Shown: one piece after another, positions 4,005-44,363 of the stretch
Layout: each line of letters begins with the position of its first letter
Position numbering within the stretch: position 1 is the stretch's first letter
Source of the DNA: Zootoca vivipara
Lineage: Eukaryota
Assembly: GCF_963506605.1 (NCBI RefSeq)
Contig: NC_083289.1
Coordinates: 54,064,001-54,128,000 of the forward strand
Direction: 5' to 3'
Length of the DNA: 64,000 bases
Notes under the pieces: model-generated
What the model was told of the DNA's origin: nothing
Seen by the model: the letters and a program-made list of their open reading frames with translations, nothing else
Database searches by the model: none
Position numbers and translations under genes: made by a program

Positions 4005-4650
4005 ATGGTGTTGACCGACGACGACAAGAACCACGTGAAGGCCGTTTGGGCCGAGATCCAGTCCCATGCCGGGGACATCGGCGCCGAGGCCATCACCAGG
4101 TAAGCCCGCCCCGTCGGGCACAGACCCTCTCCCGGGGACGAGGCCGCGGGCCGGGCGGGAGTCGGACCGTCGTCTCCCTGCTCCTCTCCTCCTCCTTCTC
4201 CCGCAGGATGTTCGCAGCGCACCCCACCACCAAGACCTACTTCGCGCACATCGACGTGCACCCCGGCTCCGCTGACATCAAGGCGCACGGCAAGAAGGTC
4301 GCGGCGGCCATCGGTGAGGCCGTGGCGCACATCGACAACATCGCCGGCGCCCTCGACAAGCTCAGCGACCTGCATGCCCAGAAGCTGCGCGTGGACCCCG
4401 TCAACTTCGCGGTGAGTCTCTCTCGCTCCCCGTCGGGGCTCCAGGGCAGGCGGGCGGGCTGGATTCCTGCTTCGCTCCGTCCGGGGCCCCGACTAACGCT
4501 CTCCCTCCGCTTTTCCCGCAGCTGCTGGGCCACTGCATCCTGGTGGCCATCGCCTCCAACCACCCGGGGCTCCTCAAGGCCAGCACCCTCGTCTCCATGG
4601 ACAAGTTCCTGGGCCGCGTCGGTATCGTGCTGACCTCCAAGTACCGCTAG
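4005..4650 (+). CDS. HBA: Hemoglobin subunit alpha-A (142 aa, 3 exons)
   Basis: Exons 4005-4099, 4207-4411 and 4522-4650 (95/205/129 nt, canonical alpha sizes); GT-AG introns of 107 and 110 nt. Protein [49 protein letters not shown]...KAHGKKV...[25 protein letters not shown]...LTSKYR with distal and proximal His intact. [12 protein letters not shown] is alphaA-type. Confidence 0.97.
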
Positions 4651-7394: not shown

Positions 7395-7549
7395 CTAGGG
7401 AGAAAGGGGGCGACTGTAGGCGGCTTCTACTTCTGCAAAGACGGCGTCAAAGAACTTTACCCAAGAGAGCCTCATGTCATCGGTGAACTCATCTTCCAGG
7501 AGTTCTTGGAAGACACAGAGAATGGTCTGAAACAGAAGCTGGGCAAAAA

Positions 7550-7585
<36 letters not shown>

Positions 7586-10500
7586 TAGGGGGCAGCTTGG
7601 GATGCATTCCCAGTGACCTCCAAGGCTCTAACCACTAGGCTCCCTTTCCAGAAGCCCTTGCTTGAGCGCCTCATGGATTCCCTGCCTGGCTTAGCCTGCA
7701 GGAGACAGCCCCAGGAAAGGCATTAAGCCTGATGGGGGGGGGGAGGGCAGCGGAGGAAGCCTGTGGCTGCTCTTGTGGCAAAGAGCAGTGCTGAGGAGGC
7801 CCAGCTGGGCTCCCTATCTGGTCCCTGAGGCCATTTCCCCCCAAGCCGTGCCCACCTGTCCCACACCTGATGCCACCTGTGCCAGCAGGTGTGGCCCGGG
7901 CACTTGCACACTTCCTGGGGCCTCCTTGCAGGGAAAGCTGGGGTGGGCTGCGCCAGGGAGTTCTTCGTCTGGAAGGTCCTGTCTGCAGCCCCCTGGTGCC
8001 TTCAGTGAGACCTGCTTGGCTTGGCTTCAGAGCACCCCTGCGCCAGACAGGCTTTGCAGTGAGCCCCACTGATGTGGCCCCCTGACCTCAAGACAATGCC
8101 AGGAGAGTGGCAGGGGGTGGCCTGCTGGGGATGCCAGGATCAGACTCAGGTCCCCCCCCCCCATGGGATGTATAATCAACGATGCAGTCAAATGCAACAT
8201 TTCCTGTTGCCTAGAATGGTGGACACACAGGGGAATGTGGCTCTAGACCGGGAGGGCTTCCTGTCATACCTGCTCTGGAGCATCCTCCCCCTGTGTGTGG
8301 CCAGGTAGGTGGGCGGGACCTTAGCAGACCCTACAAAAGGGCTGGCCATGCAGGCACCTTCCTCTTCTGCTCTCTTGGGCTCTCTGCTGGCTCTTAGCCA
8401 GCAGCACATGGCAGGACGGAAGCCACAAGGTGGAAAGTCTGAGGCCTAGCTCAGACTTCTTTTCTCTACAAATGTAACTGTAACTGCAACATGAAGCCTG
8501 CCTTCAAAATTCTTTACCCTTACTTTTAAACAAGACTGTCGTGTTGTTGTTGTTGTTGTTGTTATTATTATTATTATTATTATTATTAGTGGGAAATAAA
8601 AGGGGAAACTTACCAGCAACAATCCAGACTGGATTGCGTAACTTAAATGATTCTAACGAATCCATCAACTTGGCAATGCACAAGGGAATGTGCTCTGCTG
8701 CTTGCTCACTAGCGTGAGTGAGGAGGGATGATGTTTAATCAATATATCCTCTCCTACTTTCCTCAACATGCCCACACCCCCTGTGCCCCCTCCGGTTTGA
8801 AGGATCCCAGTTGCCCCGAGGGCACGCTGCCAGCCCAGCAGCTCCTGTGTCCTCCCCGCTTGCTCGCCCCCCCCCACTACCTGGAACATCTGTGAGGGCA
8901 CTTGGTGGACGTTCTTGTGGTTTTCCACCAGGCGCGCCACCAGCCGGCAGCCCTGCTTCCGGTTGTCCACGTTTTCAACCAGCTGGTTCAGAGCCACCAT
9001 GACCCTCCGGCCATGGGAGCCCACCTCAGGGTCCCCCAGCAGGTCGCCTTCCGTTGGGATGTTCTTGAAGAACTGCTTGCTGTCAGGGTGGTCTGTGAAG
9101 AACCTGCGTGCGGAAGAGCGAAGGTTCGCCTTGAGCGCAGAGCTCAGATTTCGTACAGACCCTTTTGAGTATCGCTGCCAAAGGCTGTGGGGGAAGCAGC
9201 ATTTGACCCCCTTCTTAACTCTCCCCCCCCCCTCTGGGCCTGGCTGAGGAGGACAGCCTGGCCTCACGGTCTGCAGAGTCTGCTTTGCTCAGGAGTCTCA
9301 GCTGGGTTCTTTCTAGAAGTGTCTGCTGGCTGCCGGCTGCTCCCTCCCTGACCGCCCCGCTTGATCCCCTGTGGATTTGGTTTGCATAGATGGTGCACTC
9401 CCTCAACTCTGTTGGGTGGGTGGCAGTAATGCCCAGTGGCCTGTTTCTTTCACTAATCAATAGGCCCCTCGACCACAGAAATCTCTGCTTCCAAACCTGG
9501 ACAAAACAGCATTCACAGAAGTCTGATCTTACTTGTCCTGCTCTGCCCCCCCCCCTTCCACTTAATTCCAGAAAGGAATTTGTAGATGGCTTTCACCCAC
9601 ACACCCACTTGGGACCTCCGGAAAGCAGAGGATGCCAGGGGAGCTGCAGCATATCTTCTGCAGCAGACATTCTGCCAGCCTCCTCTGGCTCCCACAACAA
9701 TGGCCTCCTGCTTCCCTCCAAGAGCTGCTCACCTGGAAGTCGCCCTTCCCCAGCCAGCCAGCACACTGCAGGGTTCTGAAGAGGAGCCCAGCATCCCAGA
9801 GGCCCCTCTGCTCTCCCTGAAGCTGCTAGTGGGGGCTCCTCCCTGAACAGAGGTGGAGAAATGGCCACCCCCTGCTTTCTGTCTCTTTTTGTCTCTGAGG
9901 GGTTCACCGATGATGTGCACCCAAAGGGCCCTCAGGAGGAGGAGGAGAGGATGGTGCCCTCCATCTCCTAACTCTTTCTAAAAGTCATTCTGATATGGCT
10001 CCAGGAGGTGCTCAGGAGGTGGTCTCTTAAATGGTGAGGGAGTGAAGCCAGGGGCATTGGATGGGGGCGGTCCGCCCTGGGTTCCACTCCAGGGGGGTGC
10101 CACTTGGCGCCCTCACCCCCTCGATTCCCAAGCCGAGCCTCCAGGCTCCCGGTAAAAAGTCCGCTCAGCGGTGCGCCAAGCGGACTTTTTACCGGGAGGC
10201 TGGGCTTGGGAGTCGCGGGGGTGGGGGCACCAAGTGGCACCCCCCCCCGCTGTGCCAAGTGGGCCTTCTACCTGGATCTGGAGGCACGCGGCTTTGGAGT
10301 CGCCGGGGGCGGGGCGGCGATACCCCGCTACGTAACACGCATGCGCAGCGCGATGCTGCGCATGCGTCGTTATGTGGCGGGATATCACCGCCCCCGCGCC
10401 TCCAAAGCCGCTCACCTCCAGCTACAAACTCCAGGTAGAAAACCCGCTCGGGATGCTGTACATGCATGTTACGTAGCAGGGTATCGCCGCCCCCCCGGCG

Positions 10501-11905
10501 CCTCCATAGCCGCGCGCCTCCAGCTACAAACTCCAGGTAGAAAGCCCACTCCTGAGCTACAAACTCCTGAATAGGCTTTTTACCTGGAGTTTGTAGCTGG
10601 AGGCGCGGGGCTTTGGAGGCGCCGGGGGGGCAGCGATACCCCGCCACGTAGCGACGCATGCGTTGTTATGTAGCGACCCCCCCCCCCGGTGCATGGCAAT
10701 TTGCCGCCCTGGGTGCCGCAGCGGCTCGCTACGCCGCTGAGCGAGCTGAGTGAAGCAAAGGGCTGCAGTGGGTTGAGGCCCGTTGCCTTCTGCATGGACT
10801 GCAAATGAGGTATGAAAAAGGCCAGGCTGTTACACAAAACTAATTCAATCCTATGTTGGAGGTGCAAACAGGGGGAGGGGACAATGGGGTGGGGCTGTGA
10901 AAAAAGTAAGAACTTTTGGGATATTGTATATGAGGAACTTAAAAAAATGTTTAAACAAACATTTGCGGAAAAAACCGGAAGCCTTTCTTCCAGACATTCT
11001 GACAACTGATATTCCAGATGACAAGAGGAGGGTTTTCTTACATGCAACAACAGCAGCAAGAATGTTGATTGCCAAAAACTAGAAGGGAGATAAAATTACA
11101 ACGAAGAAAGAACGGCAAATCAAATTATGTGAACACTTAGAACTAGCAAATATGACAGAGGCAATCAGGAACCAAACAATCCAAAAATTCAAAACTGAAT
11201 GGGAGTGTTACAGAGTATATTTAGAAGAACAGCATTCCCAAACCAAAATTCTTAACATGCCGTGATTAACTTTCGCAAATTAGATAACAGGCAGATAATG
11301 TACGTCATGTAAGAGCAATGAGCTAAACTGCGAAAAGGTGAAAAAGGACACAGTTAAAAAGAAAGAATGAAGGGTCCGTGGAGAGAAGTCATTTTTGAAG
11401 TATGAACGTAGAAGTGTTACTTGATGTTGAGCTATTATGATTTTCCTTTATGTATGTTATTGTGTTTTGAGTAATGAATAGAAATAACAGCAGTTCTAAC
11501 AAGCAAAGTTAATAAAGAATGTATCTATATACAGTGGTACCTTGGTTTGCAACCGTTTTGAATTACAACCACGTCAAACCCTGAAGTGTGTGTCCCTTAC
11601 AACCCCCTTTTTTTTATTGCAACCCTTTGGGGGGGGGCATTGGCGAAAGCGTGCCTTGGGTTATAACCTGTTTTGGTTTACAACTGGACCTCCAGAACGG
11701 ATTACGGTTATAAACCAAGGTATCACTTTAAAAGAGAAAGGCCAGGCGGGGAGAAACCGCCTCCGGCCACCAGGCGGCAGCACCTGACCTGATGAGAATG
11801 AGCCTGCCATTGGCTTCCGCCTCGTCAAAAGCCTTGAGCCAGCAAGTCTGGATGTGCAGCAGCTGTAGATCAGTCAGAGGCACCAGGGGCTCCAGGATGG
11901 GCAGC
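7395..11905 (-). CDS. GBY: Globin Y core exons; no ATG in this span
   Basis: Minus-strand exons 11905-11789 ([39 protein letters not shown], phase 2), 9103-8881 (223 nt; [74 protein letters not shown]) and 7538-7395 ([47 protein letters not shown]). Introns at canonical globin positions; CD1 Phe, E7 His and F8 His present. FKNIP.EG...[11 protein letters not shown] is GbY-like, and the position 3' of alpha-globin matches known GbY synteny. Confidence 0.9.
7551..7584. repeat. (TTA)n microsatellite abutting the GbY last-exon acceptor
   Basis: About 11 TTA units, ending 10 nt from the AG at 7540-7539. Confidence 0.95.
8541..8588. repeat. Compound (GTT)n(ATT)n microsatellite
   Basis: Read directly from the sequence. 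Confidence 0.95.
10049..10748. mobile_element. CpG-rich non-autonomous hAT-like DNA transposon with internal tandem and inverted repeats
   Basis: CAG...CTG termini and 8-bp TSD AGTGAAGC (10041-10048, 10749-10756). Internal hairpin at ~10127-10210. Repeated CCTCCAGCTACAAACTCCAGGTAGAA units in both orientations. Confidence 0.75.
10790..11520 (+). mobile_element. L1/Tx1-type LINE 3' fragment
   Basis: ORF2 C-terminal Cys motif [10 protein letters not shown]...[10 protein letters not shown] and [13 protein letters not shown], frameshifted. AT-rich 3'UTR ending in AATAAA. Confidence 0.75.
11532..11728. mobile_element. Tc1/mariner (Tigger-like) MITE
   Basis: TA|CAGTGGTACCTTGGTTT...AAACCAAGGTATCACTT|TA inverted termini. 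Confidence 0.75.
11765..11783 (+). promoter_or_regulatory. Candidate CTCF site
   Basis: GGCCACCAGGCGGCAGCAC resembles the CTCF core CCASYAGRKGGCRS with one mismatch. Motif match only. Confidence 0.5.
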
Positions 11906-12299
11906 CTGGGGAGGGGAGAAGAAGGAGGCAGGTGAGCTGGGCCTCAGGACCTTGGAGAGCTCAGGCTTGGAGGCCAGCAAGCAGCATCCCCTGGGGCCCA
12001 GAGGGAGAGAGAGCCCCTGGTTCCATCTGCAGTTCCAGGTGGGGCTCAGGCCCCGTTAGGTAGGGGCCCCCGAATCGGGCTTGGTGGTGCTGATGGAGGA
12101 CCTTTGCGGCAAGGAGGGCAGTGGGATTGTGCGCCTAAGATTCTCCCGCTTTGTCCATTTGACTTTCATCCGGAGTTTGTGCAGAGCAGTAGAAATATTA
12201 TCGATACGCCAAACCCACGTCAAGGGACAGTCATTGAGAGCCCCAACTCCTTTTGAATTATTGTTGGGATTGGCTAGGAAGGCAGAACAGGGTGGGGAG

Positions 12300-13730
12300 T
12301 CCAGACTCTAAAGTATGCTAATCCTAGTGGATATGGCTACAGCAGGTGGCTTCAGGTAGATGTGGGAAGCTGATTGGCAGATGACTATCAGCAAGGAGGT
12401 GTGGACCTCAATGTGCAGGAGGGAATTTCCTTTTAAATCAGTCTTGGCCCTTACTCGCTCCTCCTACTCGCCTGGAGGAGACTGAGAGGAGATATTAGTG
12501 CCACCTTCAAGTATCTGAAGGCCTGTCGCACGGAAGAGGAAGCAAACTTGTTTTCTCCTGGTCTGGAGGGTAGGACTTGAACCCATGGCTTCAAGTTACA
12601 TACAAGAAAGGAGATTCTGACTCAACATCAGGAAGGCCTGACAGTAAGAGGGTAGCAGGGCCCAGAGCTGTTCAGCAGGGGAACTGTCTCCCTCAGGAGG
12701 TTGCAGAGTCCCCTTCCTTGGAGGTTTTAAAGCAGAGGTTGAATGGCCACCTGTCATGGATGCTTGAGCTGAGATTCCTGCATTGCAGGGGGTTGGGCTA
12801 GGTGACCCTTGGGGGTACCTTTCAATTCTGATTCTATGGCCAAACTGCTGGAGTATCTCAGGTTCTAACCAAACCATGTGGTGGACGTGTGGGAAAGTGG
12901 CTCAGTTCTGGGCGGAAGTATTTGTCCAAATAGAAGCAACTACTGGACAAATGCCTCTAAATGCCTGGAGCTGGCTCTCTGCAATCTTTTTACAGGAGGG
13001 AGTATTAACTTACAGCTTCACCCTTTAGTAAACCTTTTTCGAGCTGCCAGGCTCATAAGAACAAGATACGGGAAGAACTTCAAGGAGGTTTCTCTGACAA
13101 ATTGGTCCAATTAAGTATGCCAAACTGAACTTGTGGAATTATAAAGCAATAAAATAAAATTGCTACAAGGCTCGAGGCACAAAGATTCTCTTGCTGCTGA
13201 TTGGCTCAGCTTTATTATGCGCATGGTTAAATATAAACTTCCTTCACATTGCAAAACATTTTGGTTTCCTTAAACAGTTTTTTGCCTGCTGTACAAACAG
13301 AAGTTTTTTTTGGATAAGAACTTACTATGCTCTTTGGTTCTTATTCTGCATCATGTGCTTTCTAAACCCCAGCTTCAGGGTTGGGCTGAGATATTTAATG
13401 ATTTATCTATATGACGTCTTTATATGTTGAAATAATTAAATACAAATTAGTTTAAAAGTGGGGACTTTTAAAAAGAACTTGCACACGCTGCACAGTTGCT
13501 CTGTGGACTTTGCTCCCACAAGATGTATTAATGGCCAGCAGCTTGGACAGCTTTAAGAGGGATGGGAAAATTAATGGAAGATTGCCACTGCAGCTAGTGG
13601 CCATTGATTATGTTCTACTTCCACAACTGGAGGTCATTTGTCTCAGTTTTGCACTCAGGTCCTGCTGCCGGACTTCCCTTTTGAGGCATCTGGTCGGCCG
13701 CTGTGAGAACAGGAGGCTGGACTAGGAAGG
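12300..13730 (+). mobile_element. Degenerate L1 3' fragment with a nested CR1 3' fragment (~12470-12838) and a further old CR1 fragment (~13480-13730)
   Basis: CR1 peptide LPQEVAESPSLEVLKQRLNGHL with an ATTCTGATTCTATG tail. L1-like CWSISGSNQTMWWTCGKVAQFW. LPQDVLMASSLDSFKR in the second CR1 piece. Confidence 0.6.
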
Positions 13731-13887
13731 CCTTTTCTTTGCGCTTCCAGATTATTGGCACTTAGGAGGGCATTGTGAAAACTTAAAACTGTGTTACGAG
13801 CTGTATTGTAACACATCTATGGCACGGCCACACGTGGAACGCTTTACTTATCACAGTTCTCTTTATTCTACTTTCCGGGATGTAATT

Positions 13888-14137
13888 CAGGGGCCAGCAA
13901 ACTTTTTCAGCAGGGGGGCGTTCCACCGTCCCTCAGACCTTGTGGGGGGCGGACGGACTATATTTTGAAAAAAATAAATAAAATATGAACGAATTCCTAT
14001 GCCCCACCAATAACCCAGAGATGCATTGGAAATAAAAGCACACATTCTACTCACGTAAAAACACACTGATTCCTGGACCGTATTTAGAAGGCCATTGGGC
14101 TGGCTCTGGCTCCCGGGCCTGAGTTTAACTACCCATG
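13888..14137. mobile_element. hAT-type MITE (same family as 51209-51675 and 44118-44335)
   Basis: Start CAGGGGCCAGCAAACTTTTTCAGCAGGGGG is shared with the copy at 51209. Degenerate end and TSD. Confidence 0.7.
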
Positions 14138-14343
14138 ATGTAGTGCATACAGTTCTGGTTATTACCTAAAAAATATTTTAAGAGCTGGGAAAAGCGCAGG
14201 AGAGGGCAATGGAGACGATCAGTGGTTGGAGGAGCAAGTTCCCCAAAAGGAAAGGGAACAATTTGATTGCCGTCAGGCTGAGACAGCCCAACAGGAACCA
14301 CAGCCCTACAGTTGCAGAGCAGAGGCCAGGGGTGGGGAGTAGG

Positions 14344-14906
14344 TGTGGCGAAAAAGTTGGTTTTGCTGGACAGGTTGGTTCAACAAGAGTTTCTTTTTTC
14401 TTTCTTTCCCTGCCAGCAAATGGTTCAGAAAAGGCAGCTTCTGATTGGCTGTGGTTCCGGGAGGGAGAGTTTAAAAGCAGAGGATTTGAAGAGAGACAGG
14501 GAGGTGCAGTTGGAATTGAGGGTGGAGAGGTTGGGAGACAGGTTGAGGTAAAAAGAGGGAAAGGTTGCGAACAAACAAAAAAGAATTTCCACCAGATATT
14601 TTGGGACTCCAATTCCCATCATCTCTGACCACTGGTCCTGTTAGCTAGGGATGGTGGGAGTTGTAGTCCCAAAACATCTGGAGGGCAAAGTTTGGCTATG
14701 CCTATTATAAAAAAAAAGGAACCAACTTATAACGCAACCAAAAACAACTGAGGATGAGTTAAATAGCATTGTATTCCTGAAGTAACCTAAGTTTTTTTAC
14801 TTGTGTTATATACTATCTTGCCTTAAACAAATCTTTATTGTTTATTTAAAGAAAACCCACCTGAGACTCCAACTGGCTAGTTATCCCCTCACAACGGTCC
14901 CCCACA
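14344..14906 (+). mobile_element. Possible solo LTR, with a partial hAT MITE at ~14595-14703
   Basis: TG...CA-like ends and the LTR-like promoter string CTGATTGGCTG...TTTAAAAGCAGAGG. No clean TSD found. Confidence 0.3.
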
Positions 14907-15018
14907 GGATAATATGGGTTAGAATTTGAAGAGAAAAAACCTTCAGATAAAGGGTTGCTCAGTGAGGTGGGGGCAGATCCGAGAGAGACGGGGGCCAAGG
15001 GCTTGAGAGGAAAAAGTA

Positions 15019-15432
15019 CAGTGGTGCCTCGCTTAACGAACGCCCTGCTTAACGAAATTTCCGCTTAACGAAAGGATTTTTCGAGCGGAGGTTGCTTCGC
15101 TAGACGAATGCGTTTTCGTCTAGCAAATCGCGGTTTCCCATAGGAATGCATTGAAATTCAATTAATGCGTTCCTATGGGCAAAAGTGTTCTCGAAGCTAC
15201 GAACATGAGTTTGACCAAACTGCGGGAGGCAGTGGAAGACAGGAGTGCCTGGCGTCCTCTGGTCCATGGGGTCACGAAGAGTCGGACACGGCTAAACGAC
15301 TCAACAACAACATGGGCAAAAAACAATTCGGAAAAAATGCAAATGCATTCCTATGGGACTCGCTGGACGAATTTTTTCGTTATAAGAAAAGACCCGTGGA
15401 ACGAATTAAATTCGTCTGGCGAGGCTCCACTG
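15019..15432. mobile_element. Tc1/mariner MITE with a nested BovB 3' fragment
   Basis: TA|CAGTGGTGCCTCGC...GCGAGGCTCCACTG|TA. BovB 3' end at 15185-15311 (EATNMSLTKLREAVEDRSAWR, (CAA)n tail) with a 10-bp TSD ATGGGCAAAA (15175-15184, 15312-15321). Confidence 0.88.
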
Positions 15433-15904
15433 TAGCTTGCGGCATCTGTGCTTTAGCTGGCAACTGCCTTGAACGTCGCTCATCATGGCTTGGAGTTACT
15501 CATAAAGTCTACCTCTAGGGTCCTCTTGTATGATGCGTGTCATCCAGGTGGATTTTAATGAATTCAATAGCGCAAAAGGTTACTACGAGTCATGGGGTGT
15601 GTGGCGGATGCCGTGGATTTAAAAAATAGTACATTCATAGAGTTTAGCTTATTTTTTAGTTGCTAACTTGTTAATATTGCTTCATAGATTATAAATGTCT
15701 ATTTGGTGATCGTATGACGTATGCTGCAATTATGCTGTTTAGCTTATTTTTTAGATGCTGGTTTGATAATGGTGCTTTCATGGATTGCAATCACGCTACA
15801 GACCATTTTCTATTGCAGGATTTATGCTGTACTTGTTATTGTTATGTATGTATTGTTTGGGTAGAAAATGGCACCCAGTCGGCAACTTTAGAGTCTGTTG
15901 CGTT

Positions 15905-16876
15905 TATAGAATCATAGAATCATAGAATCATAGAGTTGGAAGAGACCACAAGGGCCATCCAGTCCAACCCCCTGCCAAGCAGGAAACACCATCAAAGCAT
16001 TCCTGACAGATGGCTGTCAAGCCTCTGCTTAAAGACCTCCAAAGAAGGAGACTCCACCACACTCCTTGGCAGCAAATTCCACTGCCGAACAGCTCTTACT
16101 GTCAGGAAGTTCTTCCTAATGTTTAGGTGGAATTTTCCCTCTTGTAGTTTGAATCCGTTGCTCCGTGTCCGCTTCTCTGGAGCAGCAGAAAACAACCTTT
16201 CTCCCTCCTCTATATGACATCCTTTTATATATTTGAACATGGCTATCATATCACCCCTTAACCTTCTCTTCTCCAGGCTAAACATACCCAGCTCCCTAAG
16301 CCGTTCCTCATAAGGCATCGTTTCCAGGCCTTTGACCATTTTGGTTGCCCTCTTCTGGACACGTTCCAGCTTATCAGTATCCTTCTTGAACTGTGGTGCC
16401 CAGAACTGGACACAGTACTCCAGGTGAGGTCTGACCAGAGCAGAATACAGTGGTACTATTACTTCCCTTGATCTAGATCAGGCATGTCAAACCTGCGGCC
16501 CTCCAGATGTTTTGGACTACAATTCCCATCTTCCCCAACCACTGGTCCTGCTAGCTAGGGATCATGGGAGTTGTAGGCCAAAACATCTGGAGGGCTGCAG
16601 GTTTGACATGCCTGATCTAGATGCTATACTCCTATTGATGCAGCCCAGAATTGCATTGGCTTTTTTAGCTGCTGCATCACACTGCTGACTCATGTCAAGT
16701 CTGTGGTCTACCAAGACTCCTAGATCCTTTTCACATGTACTGCTCTCAAGCCAGGTGTCTCCCATCCTGTATTTGTGCCTTTCATTTTTTTTGCCCAAAT
16801 GTAGTACTTTACATTTCTCCTTGTTAAAATTCATCTTGTTTGCTTTGGCCCAGTTGTCTAATCTGTTAAGGTCATT
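15905..16876 (-). mobile_element. Young 5'-truncated CR1 LINE, near-identical to 1335-2990
   Basis: (ATTCTATG)n tail and ORF2 C-terminus [30 protein letters not shown]. Interrupted by a MITE at 16479-16614. Confidence 0.95.
16479..16614. mobile_element. 136-bp hAT MITE
   Basis: TIRs CAGGCATGTCAAACCTGC...GCAGGTTTGACATGCCTG. TSD ATCTAGAT (16471-16478, 16615-16622). Confidence 0.92.
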
Positions 16877-17028
16877 CTGAATTTGCTGCCAGAGTAGCTG
16901 CAAGTTCTTATTTATTACAGAAGAGAGGGAACCTGAACCTGTTTAGAAGAAAGGCAAGCGGCATGGACAGCTTCCCTCTCTTCTGTAATAAATAAGAACT
17001 TGCAGCTACTCTGGCAGCAAATTCAGAA
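16875..17028. repeat. Perfect 57-bp inverted repeat with a 40-bp spacer
   Basis: 16875-16931 is the reverse complement of 16972-17028. Confidence 0.92.
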
Positions 17029-17229
17029 GAGAGGCAAGTTCTTCTTTAGGGAAGTTCTTCCCTGTTTAGGGAAGTTTTTAATGACTGATGTTTTAATATA
17101 TTTTAAATCTTTTGTTGGAGGACTCCCAGAGTGGCTGGGGAAACTACATCGTCATCATCATACTTATTAATTATTATTATTATTATTATTACTTCCTTAG
17201 ACAATGTGCCATTGGTGAGATCTTATCTG

Positions 17230-18950
17230 CACGGGCTCCCTTGGCTTAAAAGGCGATGAGTCCAATCCACGGAGAAGCGCTCTCCGCAGCTCCAGGCAGG
17301 CCGTCTCAATGGAGCCTCCCTGCTCGGGCGCAGTCCCCCTGTCCGGCTCCCTCCCTTCCCGGGCCTGGCTCGGCCCCCGCCCCTACCCCACTCACTCAGG
17401 GGGCGCCCTGCACCAGGAGCGCCCGGGGGAAGCCATGCCTCTGCCACCACCGAACTTTCGACCGACAACGGCCGCGGGGGGCGGTTGGGGGGCGCTTCGC
17501 GAGGCGCGCCGGGGAGACGCTGCCGCTTGCCATATGAGGGGTTTTTTTTTTTGCAAAGCTCCTGTCGAGGGGGGCTCCACCCCCAAAGGGCCATGTGGCC
17601 CAGGGGGCTCCGCGCAAGATGCGCCCGTGCGCCGGCGGGCGGCTTCCCGGCGAGGCTCCCCGTCCCCGTCCCCGTGCGCGGTGCAGCGGTGCCACTGCCA
17701 GGCCCGTCGCTCGTGCCCGTCTCCGGGAGGGTTAGGGGCGGGGCACAGCCCGCAGCGCAGCGGCCGAGGCGCGCGCCCGCAACCGCCTCCCTCCCTCTGT
17801 CCGTCCCTCCCTGGCCCCCCCCCTCGGGTGTCCCCGTGACGTCAGCGCCGGCCCGGGGCCTCGGCGGGCGATGGCGACGCAGGAGGGCGAGAAGGCAGGC
17901 GCTCCGGGCTGAGGCGCGCCTGCTGCTGCCGGCTTCCCCTGGCCCCGGGGGCCGCCGCCGCCACGGCTCCGATGGCGTCCGGCCCGCTCGTGCTGGCGCT
18001 GCTGGTGCTCCTGGCCCCCGCCGCCCCCTCGCCCGCCAAGGAGACGCGGAGCAGCAACGGCGGCGGCCCCGACGGTAAGTAACGGCCGGAGGCAGCGCCA
18101 CTGCCCGGCGGAGCCGCACTGCGGAGCAGCGGGACGGAGTGGCACTCTGCACACGCCTAGAGGACCGCGGCTCCTGCGCCTTCGTGACAGGGTCGCGCCT
18201 GGCAGGGACAGCGGCGCCTCCTGCCCCGCAGCTGCTTGGGGGGATTGGGTGTGTGTGTGTGGACCGTTTCCCTCTTCCTGACCCGACACCTTTGGATGCT
18301 CGCTCGGGTTTGAGCCCGTGGCGGCGGCGGCAGCGGAGGAGGGGCGCAAGGAGGCGAGACGGAGGTCCAGTTCAGCCACGGCGCAGGTGGCCTTGGGTTA
18401 CCTCGGGGAGAGGCCCGCGGGCCGCCCCGTCTTCAGTCTTCCAGCCCCCTTTAGCCCCCTCGCCCGCAGAGAGAAGGCGCTTGTGGGGACCCCAGCAGTC
18501 ATTTGGCTAAAAGGGCCCCCTCCCGGCCAGTCCCTGTTGGAGGTGACCCCTTCCTCGGGTTGCCTGGGGGGGAGGGGCGCCGTGTTTTCGTCTCTTATTT
18601 GGGGGAACGGATGGTTCGTCCGGTTCTCGCTTGGCGCGGGGGGGGGGCGGGGCGGTGCCGCGATGGAAAAGTGCCGCTGCCAGGCTGGGGCGGCGCCCGG
18701 GTCACGGAGTCCTTGCTTTGCCCGGGGAGGCCGGTGGCGCAACGCCCGGTTCCCAGTTACCCGCAGGGCAACCTTTGCCTTTGCAGCGAGTTGCGCGGGC
18801 GGCGGGGCGGGACGTTGGTTGAGCATCACTTGGGCGCGTGGAAAGCGGCGGAGGGGGTCTCTCTCCTCGCCGGAAGAGCGGCGGATGGCTGGACCGGTCA
18901 GGCAGGCTCCCTCCCTCCCGCCCGACGGGTCAGCCGGCTTGTCCGCATTC
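17230..18950. promoter_or_regulatory. CpG island / PGAP6 promoter, probably bidirectional
   Basis: Very high CpG and GC content. GC box GGGGCGGGGC at 17735-17744 and perfect palindromic CRE TGACGTCA at 17837-17844. No TATA box. Confidence 0.85.
17396..17436 (-). CDS. Candidate first coding exon of globin Y (MASPGRSWCRAPP-E)
   Basis: Minus strand GAGGC ATG G (G at -3 and +4), then 13 codons plus GA, then donor GA|GTGAGT at 17396/17395. Phase 2 matches the acceptor at 11905 (GA|G = Glu). No transcript evidence available. Confidence 0.55.
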
Positions 18951-25983: not shown

Positions 25984-26897
25984 AAGTGCAGGGAGTGCGC
26001 CTGACAACCCTTGGAGCAGAAGCAGGAGGCACCCTTCCCCCCCCCCGCCCCACAGCAGACTGGGCAGCCTCCACTTTGGGACTCTTACCTCGACCTTGGA
26101 AGAGCTGCCTTCTGCTGTGTGGGGTGATGGCTGGCCAGCCACACAAAGTTTGCTCAGAGATGAGGGGGCTTCTTGCTTCAATTCTCTGTGTGCCACTTAC
26201 TTCATCAAAGGTCCAGAGGGTGGCAACATGATCATGGGGCCTTTTCTGCAGTGACTGCCTGCTGTAGGATGCTCTCCTTGGAGAGCCTCGCACGGCGCCT
26301 TTATTACATATCTTTAGGCGCCAGAAACTTAACTAAACAATTTAGAAGAGTTTGGATTTGATATCCCGCTTTATCTGTGAGGTGAGTGGGGCTGAGAGAC
26401 TTCAGAGCAGTGTGACTAGCCCAAGGTCACCCAGCAGCTGCTTGTGGAGGAGCGGGGAAGCGAATCTACTGCTCCTAACCACTACACCACACTGGCTCTC
26501 AAGGTTTAGTAGAGGGGGGGGTTGTCTTTTCCCCTCCCCTTTTCCCATTATTATATTATGCATTTTGTGTTTTATGCTGTAACCTACCCTGTGGTCTTTT
26601 GATGAAGGGCAGTGTATGGTTGGTTGGTTGGATCCATCTGTCTCAGGGGACTGTGCCCTTGGGGGCGAAGGCAAACTCTTGGAAGGTTGCAGTGCTTGCT
26701 GTGGCTGTAGAGACCTGTGAGGTGACGAGACCGATACAGGAGAGACATGTTTTATTGCAGCAGGGGCAGGTGAAGACATCCAGTTGTGCTGCACCATGGT
26801 GTTTCTTATCTCTGTGCTCCTCCCAGTGGTTATTCCTCCTCTGGTCACTGCTATGGATGCACAATCTGACTGCCTCCAGGCACTGTGGTCGTAGTAG

Positions 26898-41500: not shown

Positions 41501-42239
41501 GGGTCGCTGAGAGCTCCCTCCGGAGGGACCCCCAGGGTCATCTAGTCCACCCCCTGCAAGGCAGGAGTCTGTTGCACCCCCACCCTGAGACTCAGAGGGG
41601 GGTGGCTTTTTCCAGGGCAGCTGGGAATGGGGGGGACAGGGCAGCCCCTCAGTCCTCCAGAAATGACTCTCCTGTCCTGGAGAGAGAGCTCTTCCTGCTG
41701 GTGGGTTCTTGCCCATTCACCTCTTAAGATCCCTCAGCGACACTTTGCACAAATAATCTTTTCGGGAGGTTTCTTTAAAGTCCCTGCTGCATCGTATTGC
41801 ATCCCGGTGTGCTGTCAAAAAAAAAGCTACGACCGGTGTTGATTTCCCCCCTTTGGGCCTTTCCAGGATCAGGACCAGAAAGGGAAATTGGTCGTGTTAT
41901 CTTTGCAGTGCGGGAATTGACAGGAAGTTCTTAGGGTTCAGGGGGGCCATCGCCCGTCTGAGGATGATGGGGAAAGGAGCGTGTGATACGTTCAGGCTCT
42001 TTGCGTGGCTCGTTCGGAGCCCTGGGCTCTTAATTTGGGGGAGAAGATGCTCATCTTTTTCCCGCTTTGCCCGACAAAGCCTTGCCTTATTTTCCTTCGA
42101 ATGGGCTGCAGGGCCTTGGGAAGGGTGAGCCTGCGAGCGTTGCGCTGCTTTCTAACCGTCCTTCTCCAACCTTGCAGCCGGCCGTGTGTCTCCCCCCTGG
42201 GGCAGGGGCTGCTGGGCCGCTGAGGCGTGGGCCGCCGTT

Positions 42240-42266
42240 CTGCTGCTGCTGCTGCTGCTGCTGCTG
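42240..42266 (+). repeat. (CTG)9 repeat in the AXIN1 5' leader
   Basis: Ends 20 nt before the ATG at 42287. Confidence 0.9.
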
Positions 42267-42286
42267 CACCCGCGGATGCCGTCAAG

Positions 42287-44363
42287 ATGAGTGTGCAGGG
42301 CCAAGGTTTCCCTCTGGACCTTGGGGGGAGATTCACCGAGGATGCTCCGAGGCCCCCGGTGCCAGGAGAGGAAGGGGAACTCGTTTCCACGGACCTGCGG
42401 CTAAGCGGCCACGGCTTCTACTCCGGGAAGTGCGATGCCATCAAAAGCGAGACTTCCACGGCCACTCCGAGGCGCCCCGACCTGGACCTGGGCTACGAGC
42501 CGGAGGGGAGCGCTTCTCCCACCCCTCCCTACCTGAGGTGGGCAGAGTCTCTTCACTCTCTGCTGGACGACCAAGATGGGATCAACCTCTTCCGGACCTT
42601 CCTGAAGCAGGAGGATTGCGTGGACCTGCTGGACTTCTGGTTTGCTTGCAGTGGCTTCCGGAAGCTGGAGCCATGTGACTCCAACGAGGAGAAGAGGCTC
42701 AAGCTGGCCAAGGCCATTTACAAAAAGTACATTCTGGACAATAACGGGATTGTGTCGCGGCAGATCAAGCCAGCCACGAAGAGCTTTATAAAAGATTGCG
42801 TGATGAAGCAGCTGATTGACCCGGCCATGTTTGACCAGGCCCAGACAGAGATCCAGTCCATGATCGAGGAGAACACGTACCCCCTCTTCCTTAAGTCGGA
42901 TATTTATTTGGAGTATACAAGGACGGGTGGGGAGAGTCCGAAGGTGTACAGTGACCAGAGCTCAGGGTCGGGGACAGGAAAGTGTCTCCCCGGCTATTTG
43001 CCTACCCTTAACGAGGACGAGGAATGGAAGTGCGACAAAGAGGTGGAGGAGGAGATGGCCGGCCGGGAGTCTGCTCCCTCCAGCCGACTCACCCAGAAGC
43101 TTCTCCTGGAGACGGCCACGCAGCGAGCCACGTCGTCCAGGAGATACAGTGAGGGGAGAGAGTTCAGGTGAGAGCTGCAGGTTGTCTTCGCGTGAGCCGC
43201 GCTTGCTTGCCCCGCCATGTGGTGCTGGTGGTTGCAGGGGGGACAGAAGCCTGCTTCCGCCAGGTAGCAGGGCAGGATGTGGAGGCGCCCCCTGGCAGCT
43301 GGGGAAGAGCTGGAAGGGGGTTACAGGCCCAGCTCCTTTCAGCGGCAGAGATTTGAGCGAAGCTCATCCCCAGCCCTGCCGCCTGGAGGGTGCAGGTGCT
43401 GGGGCCCGATCCTGGATCTGTGTGCAGAACAGGTGCTCTGCCGCTTGGCTGCGGCCCCTGCCTGAAGCTCCTGGCAGTTTTGCTGTCCTGCCTAACTGCT
43501 CTCGCAACAAATTTGGTGAAGTTATCGATAGATGCATTGCTGGAAATTTCTCCAGAATTGGCCTCTGGGTCTCACACTGTCTATTCCACCCCATCCCAAC
43601 GACTTTGTCATAACCTACCGTAGAATAAGCTCTAAACTTGCTAGAAGAACATAGCACATAAACTAGTAAGATTAAAGAAGACCCACTCAATCCAGATATC
43701 CCATGATCAACTTCCAGGCTCGAATTACATTTTATTTTATGATTGTCTCTCTTTGCCCCCCCACCCAACCCCAACATAAACAGGTTCTAGAAACAGCCCG
43801 GGAGCTCCAAGGAGTGCTTTTGCGGGACCCCCTCCCTCTTGCTAGGATCTGGAGATAGGCTCTTCCACCCCCCTCCCCCTATTGCATTTACTGTCTTAGC
43901 AGTCTGGAGGGCAACAGCTGGATTTCATCGTCCACCAAGCAAATTCCCCCCCCCTTGTTGCAGATGCTGGGAGCTTTCTGTTTTGAGTACCGTTTTCATC
44001 TGAGTTTTGAAACAGGAATGTTGCATGCGAAACTGCAAGAGAAGGAGACCCTTCACTGATCTCTTGCTAGTTTAATCAGGAGGTTCAAACTTCCTTGTGG
44101 AGTTTGAACCTCCAAGTCAGGGGTAGGCAGTCTAAGGCCCGGGGGCCGGATGCGGCCCAATCGCCTTCTAAATCCGGCCCGCGGACGGTCTGGGAATCAG
44201 CGTGTTTTTACATGAGTGGAATGTGTACTTTTATTTAAAATGCATCTCTGGCTTATTTGTGGGGCATAAAAATTCGTTCTTTTTTTCCTCCAAAATATAG
44301 ACCGGCCCACCACCTGGTCTGGGGGCAAAGTTTTGGAACTCCTAAGAGACCCTTTCAGGGAGG

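Follow-up and report, generated by a model that had tools for sequence, protein, structure and literature searches.

The globin Y (GbY) gene of the lizard Zootoca vivipara reads CTG at its ancestral start codon, which raises the question of where its translation begins. The window, that is, the whole stretch of 64,000 nucleotides that was analyzed, carries the gene on its minus strand. A preliminary description, made from the letters alone, had proposed a candidate new first exon at 17436-17396 with a GTGAGT donor, joined across a 5,490-nt intron to the acceptor at 11905 and giving a four-exon, 174-amino-acid, N-terminally extended GbY. The exon, donor, intron and acceptor are correct to the base and the protein is exact, being equal to RefSeq XP_034986447.1; the exon is not new, since NCBI has already annotated it as part of isoform X2. 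On the evidence of gene models compared across squamates, 17396-17436 is probably the genuine first coding exon of Zootoca GbY. The features of this gene model are as follows.

17396-17436, minus strand: coding part of the GbY leader exon (first coding exon), 41 nt, with ATG at 17436-17434; matches XP_034986447.1.
17390-17395, minus strand: splice donor GTGAGT of the leader exon, with GT at 17395-17394.
11906-17395, minus strand: GbY intron 1, 5,490 nt, repeat-rich.
11789-11905, minus strand: exon 2 (ancestral exon 1), 117 nt, encoding (E)...LILI(R); all three RefSeq isoforms join here.
11884-11886, minus strand: CTG (Leu) at the ancestral GbY start, column 23 of alignment A2, 98 nt from the exon end.
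8881-9103, minus strand: exon 3, 223 nt, globin core with the distal and proximal His; Pfam Globin PF00042, E 5e-13.
7395-7538, minus strand: coding part of exon 4, 144 nt including TAG; AATAAA follows at 7334-7329.

Read on the minus strand, the leader exon and its donor are gaggcATGGCTTCCCCCGGGCGCTCCTGGTGCAGGGCGCCCCCTGA/GTGAGT (here and below, a slash marks the exon junction). The exon translates as MASPGRSWCRAPP plus two spare bases, the GA of a split Glu codon, and its ATG stands in the Kozak context gaggcATGg, with the purine G at -3 and G at +4. The acceptor at 11905 (...ttctcccctccccag/G) is strong, with a pyrimidine tract and cag/G, and lies 19 nt upstream of the ancestral start position. 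The four coding exons, all on the minus strand, add up to a GbY CDS of 525 nt and 174 amino acids, in which neither a stop nor a frameshift was found, and all introns are GT..AG.

XP_034986447.1 is entitled "hemoglobin subunit beta-Z-like isoform X2" [Zootoca vivipara] and has 174 amino acids. It was matched at 100% identity by the exon-3 query (region 55-129 of the translated interval 8668-9267, minus strand), and identity was established exon by exon, with the split codons GA/G (E14) and AG/G (R53) read by eye. Each of the four exon translations is identical to its segment of the record; the record and the window model share the same four exons and the N-terminus MASPGRSWCRAPPELPILEP, with no sequence difference. 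The record is a computational model, misnamed beta-globin/cytoglobin-like, and no experimental study of it was found in the literature. Two further isoforms are annotated with other first exons.

17193-17212, minus strand: coding part of the isoform X3 first exon, MAHCLR plus AA, with ATG at 17212 and donor GTAATA.
26588-26748, minus strand: coding part of the isoform X1 first exon, 53 amino acids plus GG, with donor GTAGGT.

The X3 protein has 167 amino acids and starts MAHCLRK/LPILEP; the X1 protein has 214, and its first exon lies beyond the 3' end of the neighboring PGAP6-like gene. X1, X2 and X3 all join the acceptor at 11905, the leader exon being one of three annotated alternative first exons.

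The assignment of the gene to GbY was examined by domain content, exon structure and gene order. The product has a globin domain with the distal and proximal histidines, and the columns of His83, His115 and His119 are invariant in 19 aligned sequences. Counted from 11886, the coding exons measure 98, 223 and 144 nt, the lengths published for platypus GBY (PMC2529266, Table 1), and the interval 11886-11789 alone equals platypus exon 1 with its 98 nt. The AF2 model, computed from alignment A1, is a seven-helix globin with a mean pLDDT of 88 and a pTM of 0.82; in the leader, pLDDT is below 50 for residues 1-12 and near 60 for residues 13-20. The 20-residue leader is therefore predicted to be disordered and to precede a normal globin fold. 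In the maximum likelihood (ML) tree the Zootoca tip branch is 0.13, about twice the 0.057 of Lacerta, and the stem leading to the lacertids is long (0.54). At conserved sites Zootoca has a few substitutions of its own, among them Y64F and SWEKFF to SWVKFF. Zootoca GbY shows mild acceleration, not decay.

The neighborhood of the gene gave a concordant assignment, and the leader exon was located at the edge of a CpG island.

17230-18500, no strand: CpG island, GC 0.74, CpG observed/expected 0.83, with the PGAP6-like first coding exon inside and the GbY leader at its edge.
17972-18074, plus strand: PGAP6-like first coding exon, MASGPLVLALLVLLAP..., signal-peptide-like, with donor GTAAGT.

An alpha-globin exon lies on the plus strand at about 4.2-4.45 kb, four colinear plus-strand exons at 22.5-24.6 kb match Pfam DUF3522 (TMEM8 family), and AXIN1, with its RGS and tankyrase-binding domains, lies at 42.2-43.2 kb. 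The Pfam scan of the first ten plus-strand neighbor ORFs returned AXIN1 only, and the DUF3522 matches came from a second ORF set. The order in the window is alpha-globin (+), GbY (-), PGAP6/TMEM8A (+) and AXIN1, with GbY tail-to-tail with the alpha-globin gene and head-to-head with PGAP6; alpha-globin, the DUF3522 exons and AXIN1 are the flanking genes expected of a GbY orthologue. This order agrees with the published sauropsid synteny, in which TMEM8A is the neighbor of GbY, brought to the cluster by an inversion (PMC5786229, PMC4524481). The exon had been described as lying in the PGAP6 CpG island, and it does so, at the island edge, the island being shared head-to-head with the TMEM8-family gene. 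The ATG at 17436 (-) and the ATG at 17972 (+) are 535 nt apart, so that two head-to-head genes stand less than 1 kb from each other in one CpG island, the arrangement expected of a bidirectional promoter. From this layout it is reasonable to infer a promoter common to GbY and PGAP6.

The canonical ATG of exon 1 is the one expected GbY character that was not found, CTG standing in its place. Column 23 of alignment A2 holds M for the turtle, alligator and platypus sequences and L for those of Zootoca and Lacerta, and no in-frame ATG occurs between the upstream stop and the CTG at 11886, in the old exon 1 and its upstream continuation. The ancestral Met is kept in 4 of the 16 squamates (Podarcis, Varanus, Tiliqua and Rhineura); in Anolis and Sceloporus a Met stands three residues downstream of the ancestral column, and the remaining ten lack one in the vicinity. 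The 154-amino-acid, three-exon form that starts from the old Met is that of turtle, alligator and platypus. Since the Met is present in these three and in only four squamates, loss of the start codon was secondary and recurrent; and as most squamates have lost the ATG, its absence is a clade trait that gives no ground for excluding the Zootoca gene from the GbY family. Zootoca groups with Lacerta agilis in the ML tree (93/87), which fits a single Met-to-Leu change in their common ancestor, with the column itself being part of the tree data.

Squamate sequences were collected by an exhaustive representative search, cluster look-ups and a profile search with alignment A1; the orthologue comparison is built on predicted proteins, not on cDNA or peptides. 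A leader of about 20 amino acids is present in 15 of the 16 squamate GbY models in alignment A2, namely, in lacertids, an agamid, iguanians, Varanus, snakes, a skink and geckos. The sole leaderless squamate is Rhineura, represented by its 154-amino-acid isoform X2. Total length is 174-175 amino acids in ten squamate orthologue models, with the split codon at the same place, and the leader starts with M-A in 14 of 15 species and with M-S in Lacerta agilis. The N-termini read as follows.

Podarcis raffonei: MASPGRSGSRAPPE/LPILEPM, old Met kept; a 154-amino-acid isoform from the old Met is also modeled.
Lacerta agilis: MSSPGSSRSRAPSL/LPILEPL, Leu at the old start, as in Zootoca.
Pogona: MADVGGSGGKRESG/PPFPVSV.
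Varanus: MAVFGGSSGRLKVG/LPSSEPM.
Liasis (python): MAVFGGPSGKLKAG/PFLSDPL.
Notechis and Naja (elapids): MAIFGGPSGKLKVG/PP.SDPL.
Thamnophis: MAVFGGPSGKLKVG/PPASDPL.
Candoia: first 14 residues the same.
Gekko: MAAAPASSGGRGKAG/PGELSPP.
Heteronotia: ...SRTKAG/EPPLQPL.
Eublepharis: MAASSSRAKAG/EP...
Anolis sagrei, Sceloporus and Tiliqua: shorter leaders.

The snake leaders follow the pattern MA[VI]FGGPSGKLK[VA]G/PP.SDPL and the gecko leaders ...[KR].KAG/, whereas the lacertid leader (MASPGRS..RAPPE) has diverged from the toxicoferan and gecko pattern (MAVFGG.SGKLKxG). The coding length of 13 codons plus 2 nt is identical in Pogona, Varanus, python, Notechis and Naja. Leader identity reaches 16-17 of 20 residues between python and an elapid or colubrid; for Zootoca it is 18 of 20 with Podarcis and 14 of 20 with Lacerta. 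Within lacertids, Lacerta matches at 14-15 of 20 leader residues compared with a core identity of 0.89-0.94, the leader diverging faster. Naja naja E2320_012351 and Liasis KAM6423817, two submitter annotations made outside the NCBI pipeline, agree on this first exon, and the leader exon is thus not an artefact of one predictor.

These comparisons also bear on the origin of the leader. The preliminary description had asked for conservation of the exon in lizards that share the CTG, and the leader is indeed kept in Lacerta agilis, where Leu likewise stands in place of the ancestral Met. Its further suggestion, that exonised promoter-antisense sequence rescued or repurposed GbY, is not supported, as the leader is common to geckos, a skink, lacertids, iguanians, Varanus and snakes. 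With such a spread, the leader long predates the change from ATG to CTG, and Podarcis, where leader and old Met occur together, counts against the rescue story as well. A recent rescue specific to Zootoca was ruled out by the equivalent leaders in 15 of 16 squamates.

Several other explanations of the segment were weighed. Considered by sequence alone, the leader exon is not unique: the 18 kb upstream contain five GTRAGT motifs on the minus strand, the leader donor among them, and exons with an ATG, an open frame and the right phase number 3 with a GTRAGT donor and 235 with any GT. Homology lifts the leader exon above chance. Chance would mean that a short open frame between an ATG and a GT fits the phase by accident in a GC-rich island. 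These 235 candidates, 3 of them with a consensus donor, lend this reading some room, but the peptide is homologous in Podarcis and Lacerta and the same coding length recurs in Pogona, Varanus, python, Notechis and Naja, and coincidence is extremely improbable. Decay is somewhat less so, although still improbable: Zootoca GbY would be decaying or untranslated after the loss of its start codon, and the upstream ATG would be accidental and exploited by the predictor. The change from ATG to CTG, the longer Zootoca branch and the changes at conserved sites are in line with this. So are the RNA reads over 11760-17750, which come from three raw-read RNA-seq data sets of the species and from a small contig run; their depth is zero on 11760-12359 and 17160-17750, the intervals that hold the two exons and the promoter, with about 6% of each run read and no expressed exon as a positive control. 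Coverage within 11760-17750 consists of repeat-like intron patches only, and the reads on intron 1, 95-99% alike in patchy pile-ups with loose ends, behave as dispersed repeats. Expression of GbY is, however, low in turtles too, where it does not exceed about 10^4 copies per ug RNA (PMC4524481). Against decay stand also the intact 525 nt with three canonical introns, the retained heme-contact histidines and the confidently predicted globin fold, Lacerta agilis, whose gene is still intact with the same Leu and a leader, and the species that keep the old Met and carry the same leader.

An untranslated leader is the strongest of these competitors and is still unlikely. Here the exon would be transcribed and spliced but belong to the 5'UTR, translation would start at the CUG at 11886 or the ATG of X1 (26748) or X3 (17212) would be dominant, and the leader peptide would be an artefact that arose when the annotation extended the ORF. 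Gene predictors carry a reading frame up to its first in-frame ATG, and a 5'UTR exon could for this reason pass as coding. Three alternative first exons are annotated in Zootoca, a model of 154 amino acids from the old Met exists in Podarcis, and the listed Rhineura isoform also has 154; in addition, the Podarcis models run further upstream in a frame that differs from that of Zootoca, which indicates that ORFs extend easily in the GC-rich leader exon. The out-of-frame ATGs at 17533 and 17594 that had been pointed out earlier are present in the sequence and could suppress the ATG at 17436; the former opens a small reading frame.

17396-17533, minus strand: possible uORF, out-of-frame ATG at 17533 in the context cctcatATGg, 45 codons, TGA at 17398-17396.

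The TGA of this uORF forms the final three bases of the leader exon, and the second out-of-frame ATG lies at 17594 on the minus strand; both are relevant only if transcription starts upstream of them, in which case they would precede the leader ATG. Yet 10 of 16 squamates keep an intact globin ORF although Met is absent from the old start and its vicinity, the CUG context gagcccCTGg is poor, with C at -3, and the X1 and X3 first exons have no counterpart in any of the other species' models examined. Furthermore, between Varanus and snakes the leader amino acids are as conserved as the core (13-14 of 20 residues compared with 0.71-0.72), and conservation over such a distance argues, at the level of predicted proteins, for a translated rather than an untranslated leader.

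A genuine first coding exon, as in NCBI isoform X2, is the preferred reading, and the following course of events would account for it. The leader exon supplies the ATG and 13.7 codons and can be spliced over the 5.5-kb repeat-rich intron to the acceptor 19 nt above the old start codon. The exon and its ATG probably date back to the squamate ancestor or earlier, and may have followed the sauropsid inversion by which GbY came to lie beside TMEM8A. Once translation started upstream, the old ATG would have become dispensable and would have been lost repeatedly, with CTG the outcome in the Zootoca/Lacerta lineage. Transcription probably proceeds from the bidirectional CpG-island promoter. The leader has no acylation motif and no assigned function, and its minimal role would be to provide a start codon. 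A more far-reaching version is doubtful, although conceivable: all squamates would have remodeled GbY into a gene of four coding exons, driven from the PGAP6/TMEM8A CpG island that the sauropsid inversion had brought close, with a new upstream ATG and a conserved leader of about 20 residues, MAxxGGxSG[KR]xKxG-PPxSDP, acting in localization, stability or regulation, which would have freed the old start to decay in most lineages. The searchable papers make no mention of such a four-exon remodeling with a functional leader in squamate GbY, and the literature search found no paper on a squamate GbY leader or extension.

For this window the outcome is ordinary, since NCBI already holds the gene model that was rebuilt from raw sequence. 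The wider squamate pattern, which rests on gene models, is of modest interest for globin researchers; GbY is the least understood vertebrate globin, with its function and heme coordination state unknown (PMC7475203). The models suggest that squamate GbY starts one exon earlier, with a conserved leader and repeated loss of the original start codon. Squamate GbY sequences used for phylogeny or expression should accordingly include the leader, and an exon 1 without ATG should not be scored as a pseudogene. A promoter shared with PGAP6 may explain broad low-level expression of GbY. In platypus, expression peaks in testis (PMC2529266), and in turtles it is low and spread over tissues (PMC4524481).

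Several GbY models are automatically named "cytoglobin-like" by NCBI; GbY forms its own clade (PMC3156568), and the name "cytoglobin-1-like" was flagged as wrong by the turtle authors (PMC4524481). Published descriptions give GbY 154 amino acids and three exons (PMC2529266). The canonical GbY of platypus, turtle and alligator and that of Zootoca share the globin fold and, from the old start, the 98/223/144 structure; in Zootoca, however, the old ATG is CTG, and an extra 5' coding exon plus 19 nt of former leader add 20 residues. In alligator, models X1 and X2 use a common acceptor some 7 codons ahead of the ATG. Globin X (GbX) and squamate GbY are both vertebrate globins with an N-terminal extension. 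GbX is anchored to the membrane by myristoylation at Gly2 and palmitoylation at Cys3 (PMC4524481). The GbY leader is unlike it, residue 2 being Ala in 14 of 15 leaders and Ser in that of Lacerta agilis, and it has no conserved Cys, the cysteines of squamate leaders being sporadic (C9 in Zootoca, C4 in Tiliqua). The earlier view that the Zootoca leader lacks Gly2 and is not predicted to be myristoylated thus extends to all 15 leaders. The squamate leaders do not fit a GbX-type acylated globin, being without Gly2 and a conserved Cys3. Cytoglobin carries a disordered N-terminal extension of about 20 residues on its globin core; it is a different paralogue from GbY, and an N-terminal extension is found in both.

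The first exons of the RefSeq globin Y (GbY) isoforms X1 and X3, both spliced to the acceptor at 11905, and two exons of neighbouring genes lie in the window as follows.

26588-26748, minus strand: first exon of isoform X1, 53 aa plus a split codon, donor GTAGGT
17193-17212, minus strand: first exon of isoform X3, MAHCLR+AA, donor GTAATA
About 4200-4450, plus strand (opposite to GbY): alpha-globin exon 2
42224-43168, plus strand: an exon of AXIN1, with Pfam matches to a tankyrase-binding and an RGS domain (E 1e-26 to 1e-29)

GbY and the alpha-globin gene are arranged tail to tail, GbY being inverted relative to the alpha-globin cluster.

The isoform X3 first exon lies ~185 nt downstream of the donor of the X2 first exon and could be the X2 first exon with a later donor, in which case the frame opened by ATG 17436 would be short, ending ahead of the X3 start. 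The isoform X1 first exon is located past the PGAP6-like gene, on its 3' side, and the X1 transcript would cross the whole of PGAP6 antisense and then splice to 11905. No counterpart of the X1 first exon was found among the GbY models of other species examined.

The intron between the X2 first exon and 11905 carried patches of RNA reads (12360-17160) at 95-99% identity and up to hundreds-fold depth; many loose ends were present, as were small internal joints. Such pile-ups are typical of expressed dispersed repeats at other genomic sites rather than of this locus.

Zootoca 17396-17594 (minus strand) was set against the Podarcis models P0003, P0022, and P0023. In the models of Podarcis muralis and P. 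lilfordi (252-409 aa), the peptide that starts at Zootoca ATG 17533, MASGSVSPARLAKRPPTAPRGRCRSKVRWW..., shares the reading frame of the globin; in Zootoca it is out of frame with the globin and stops at the exon end. Thus, the DNA above ATG 17436 is conserved, whereas the reading frame is not.

Upstream in-frame extensions also occur in modelled GbY isoforms outside squamates, namely, in Alligator sinensis (P0180 and P0182), turtles (P0013 and P0016), and echidna (P0183). The echidna model has Ser at the position of the platypus start Met and a 41-aa extension. Both alligator isoforms share GKYLAIT ahead of the Met, and this common sequence points to an acceptor of a 5'UTR intron located roughly where the squamate acceptor lies.
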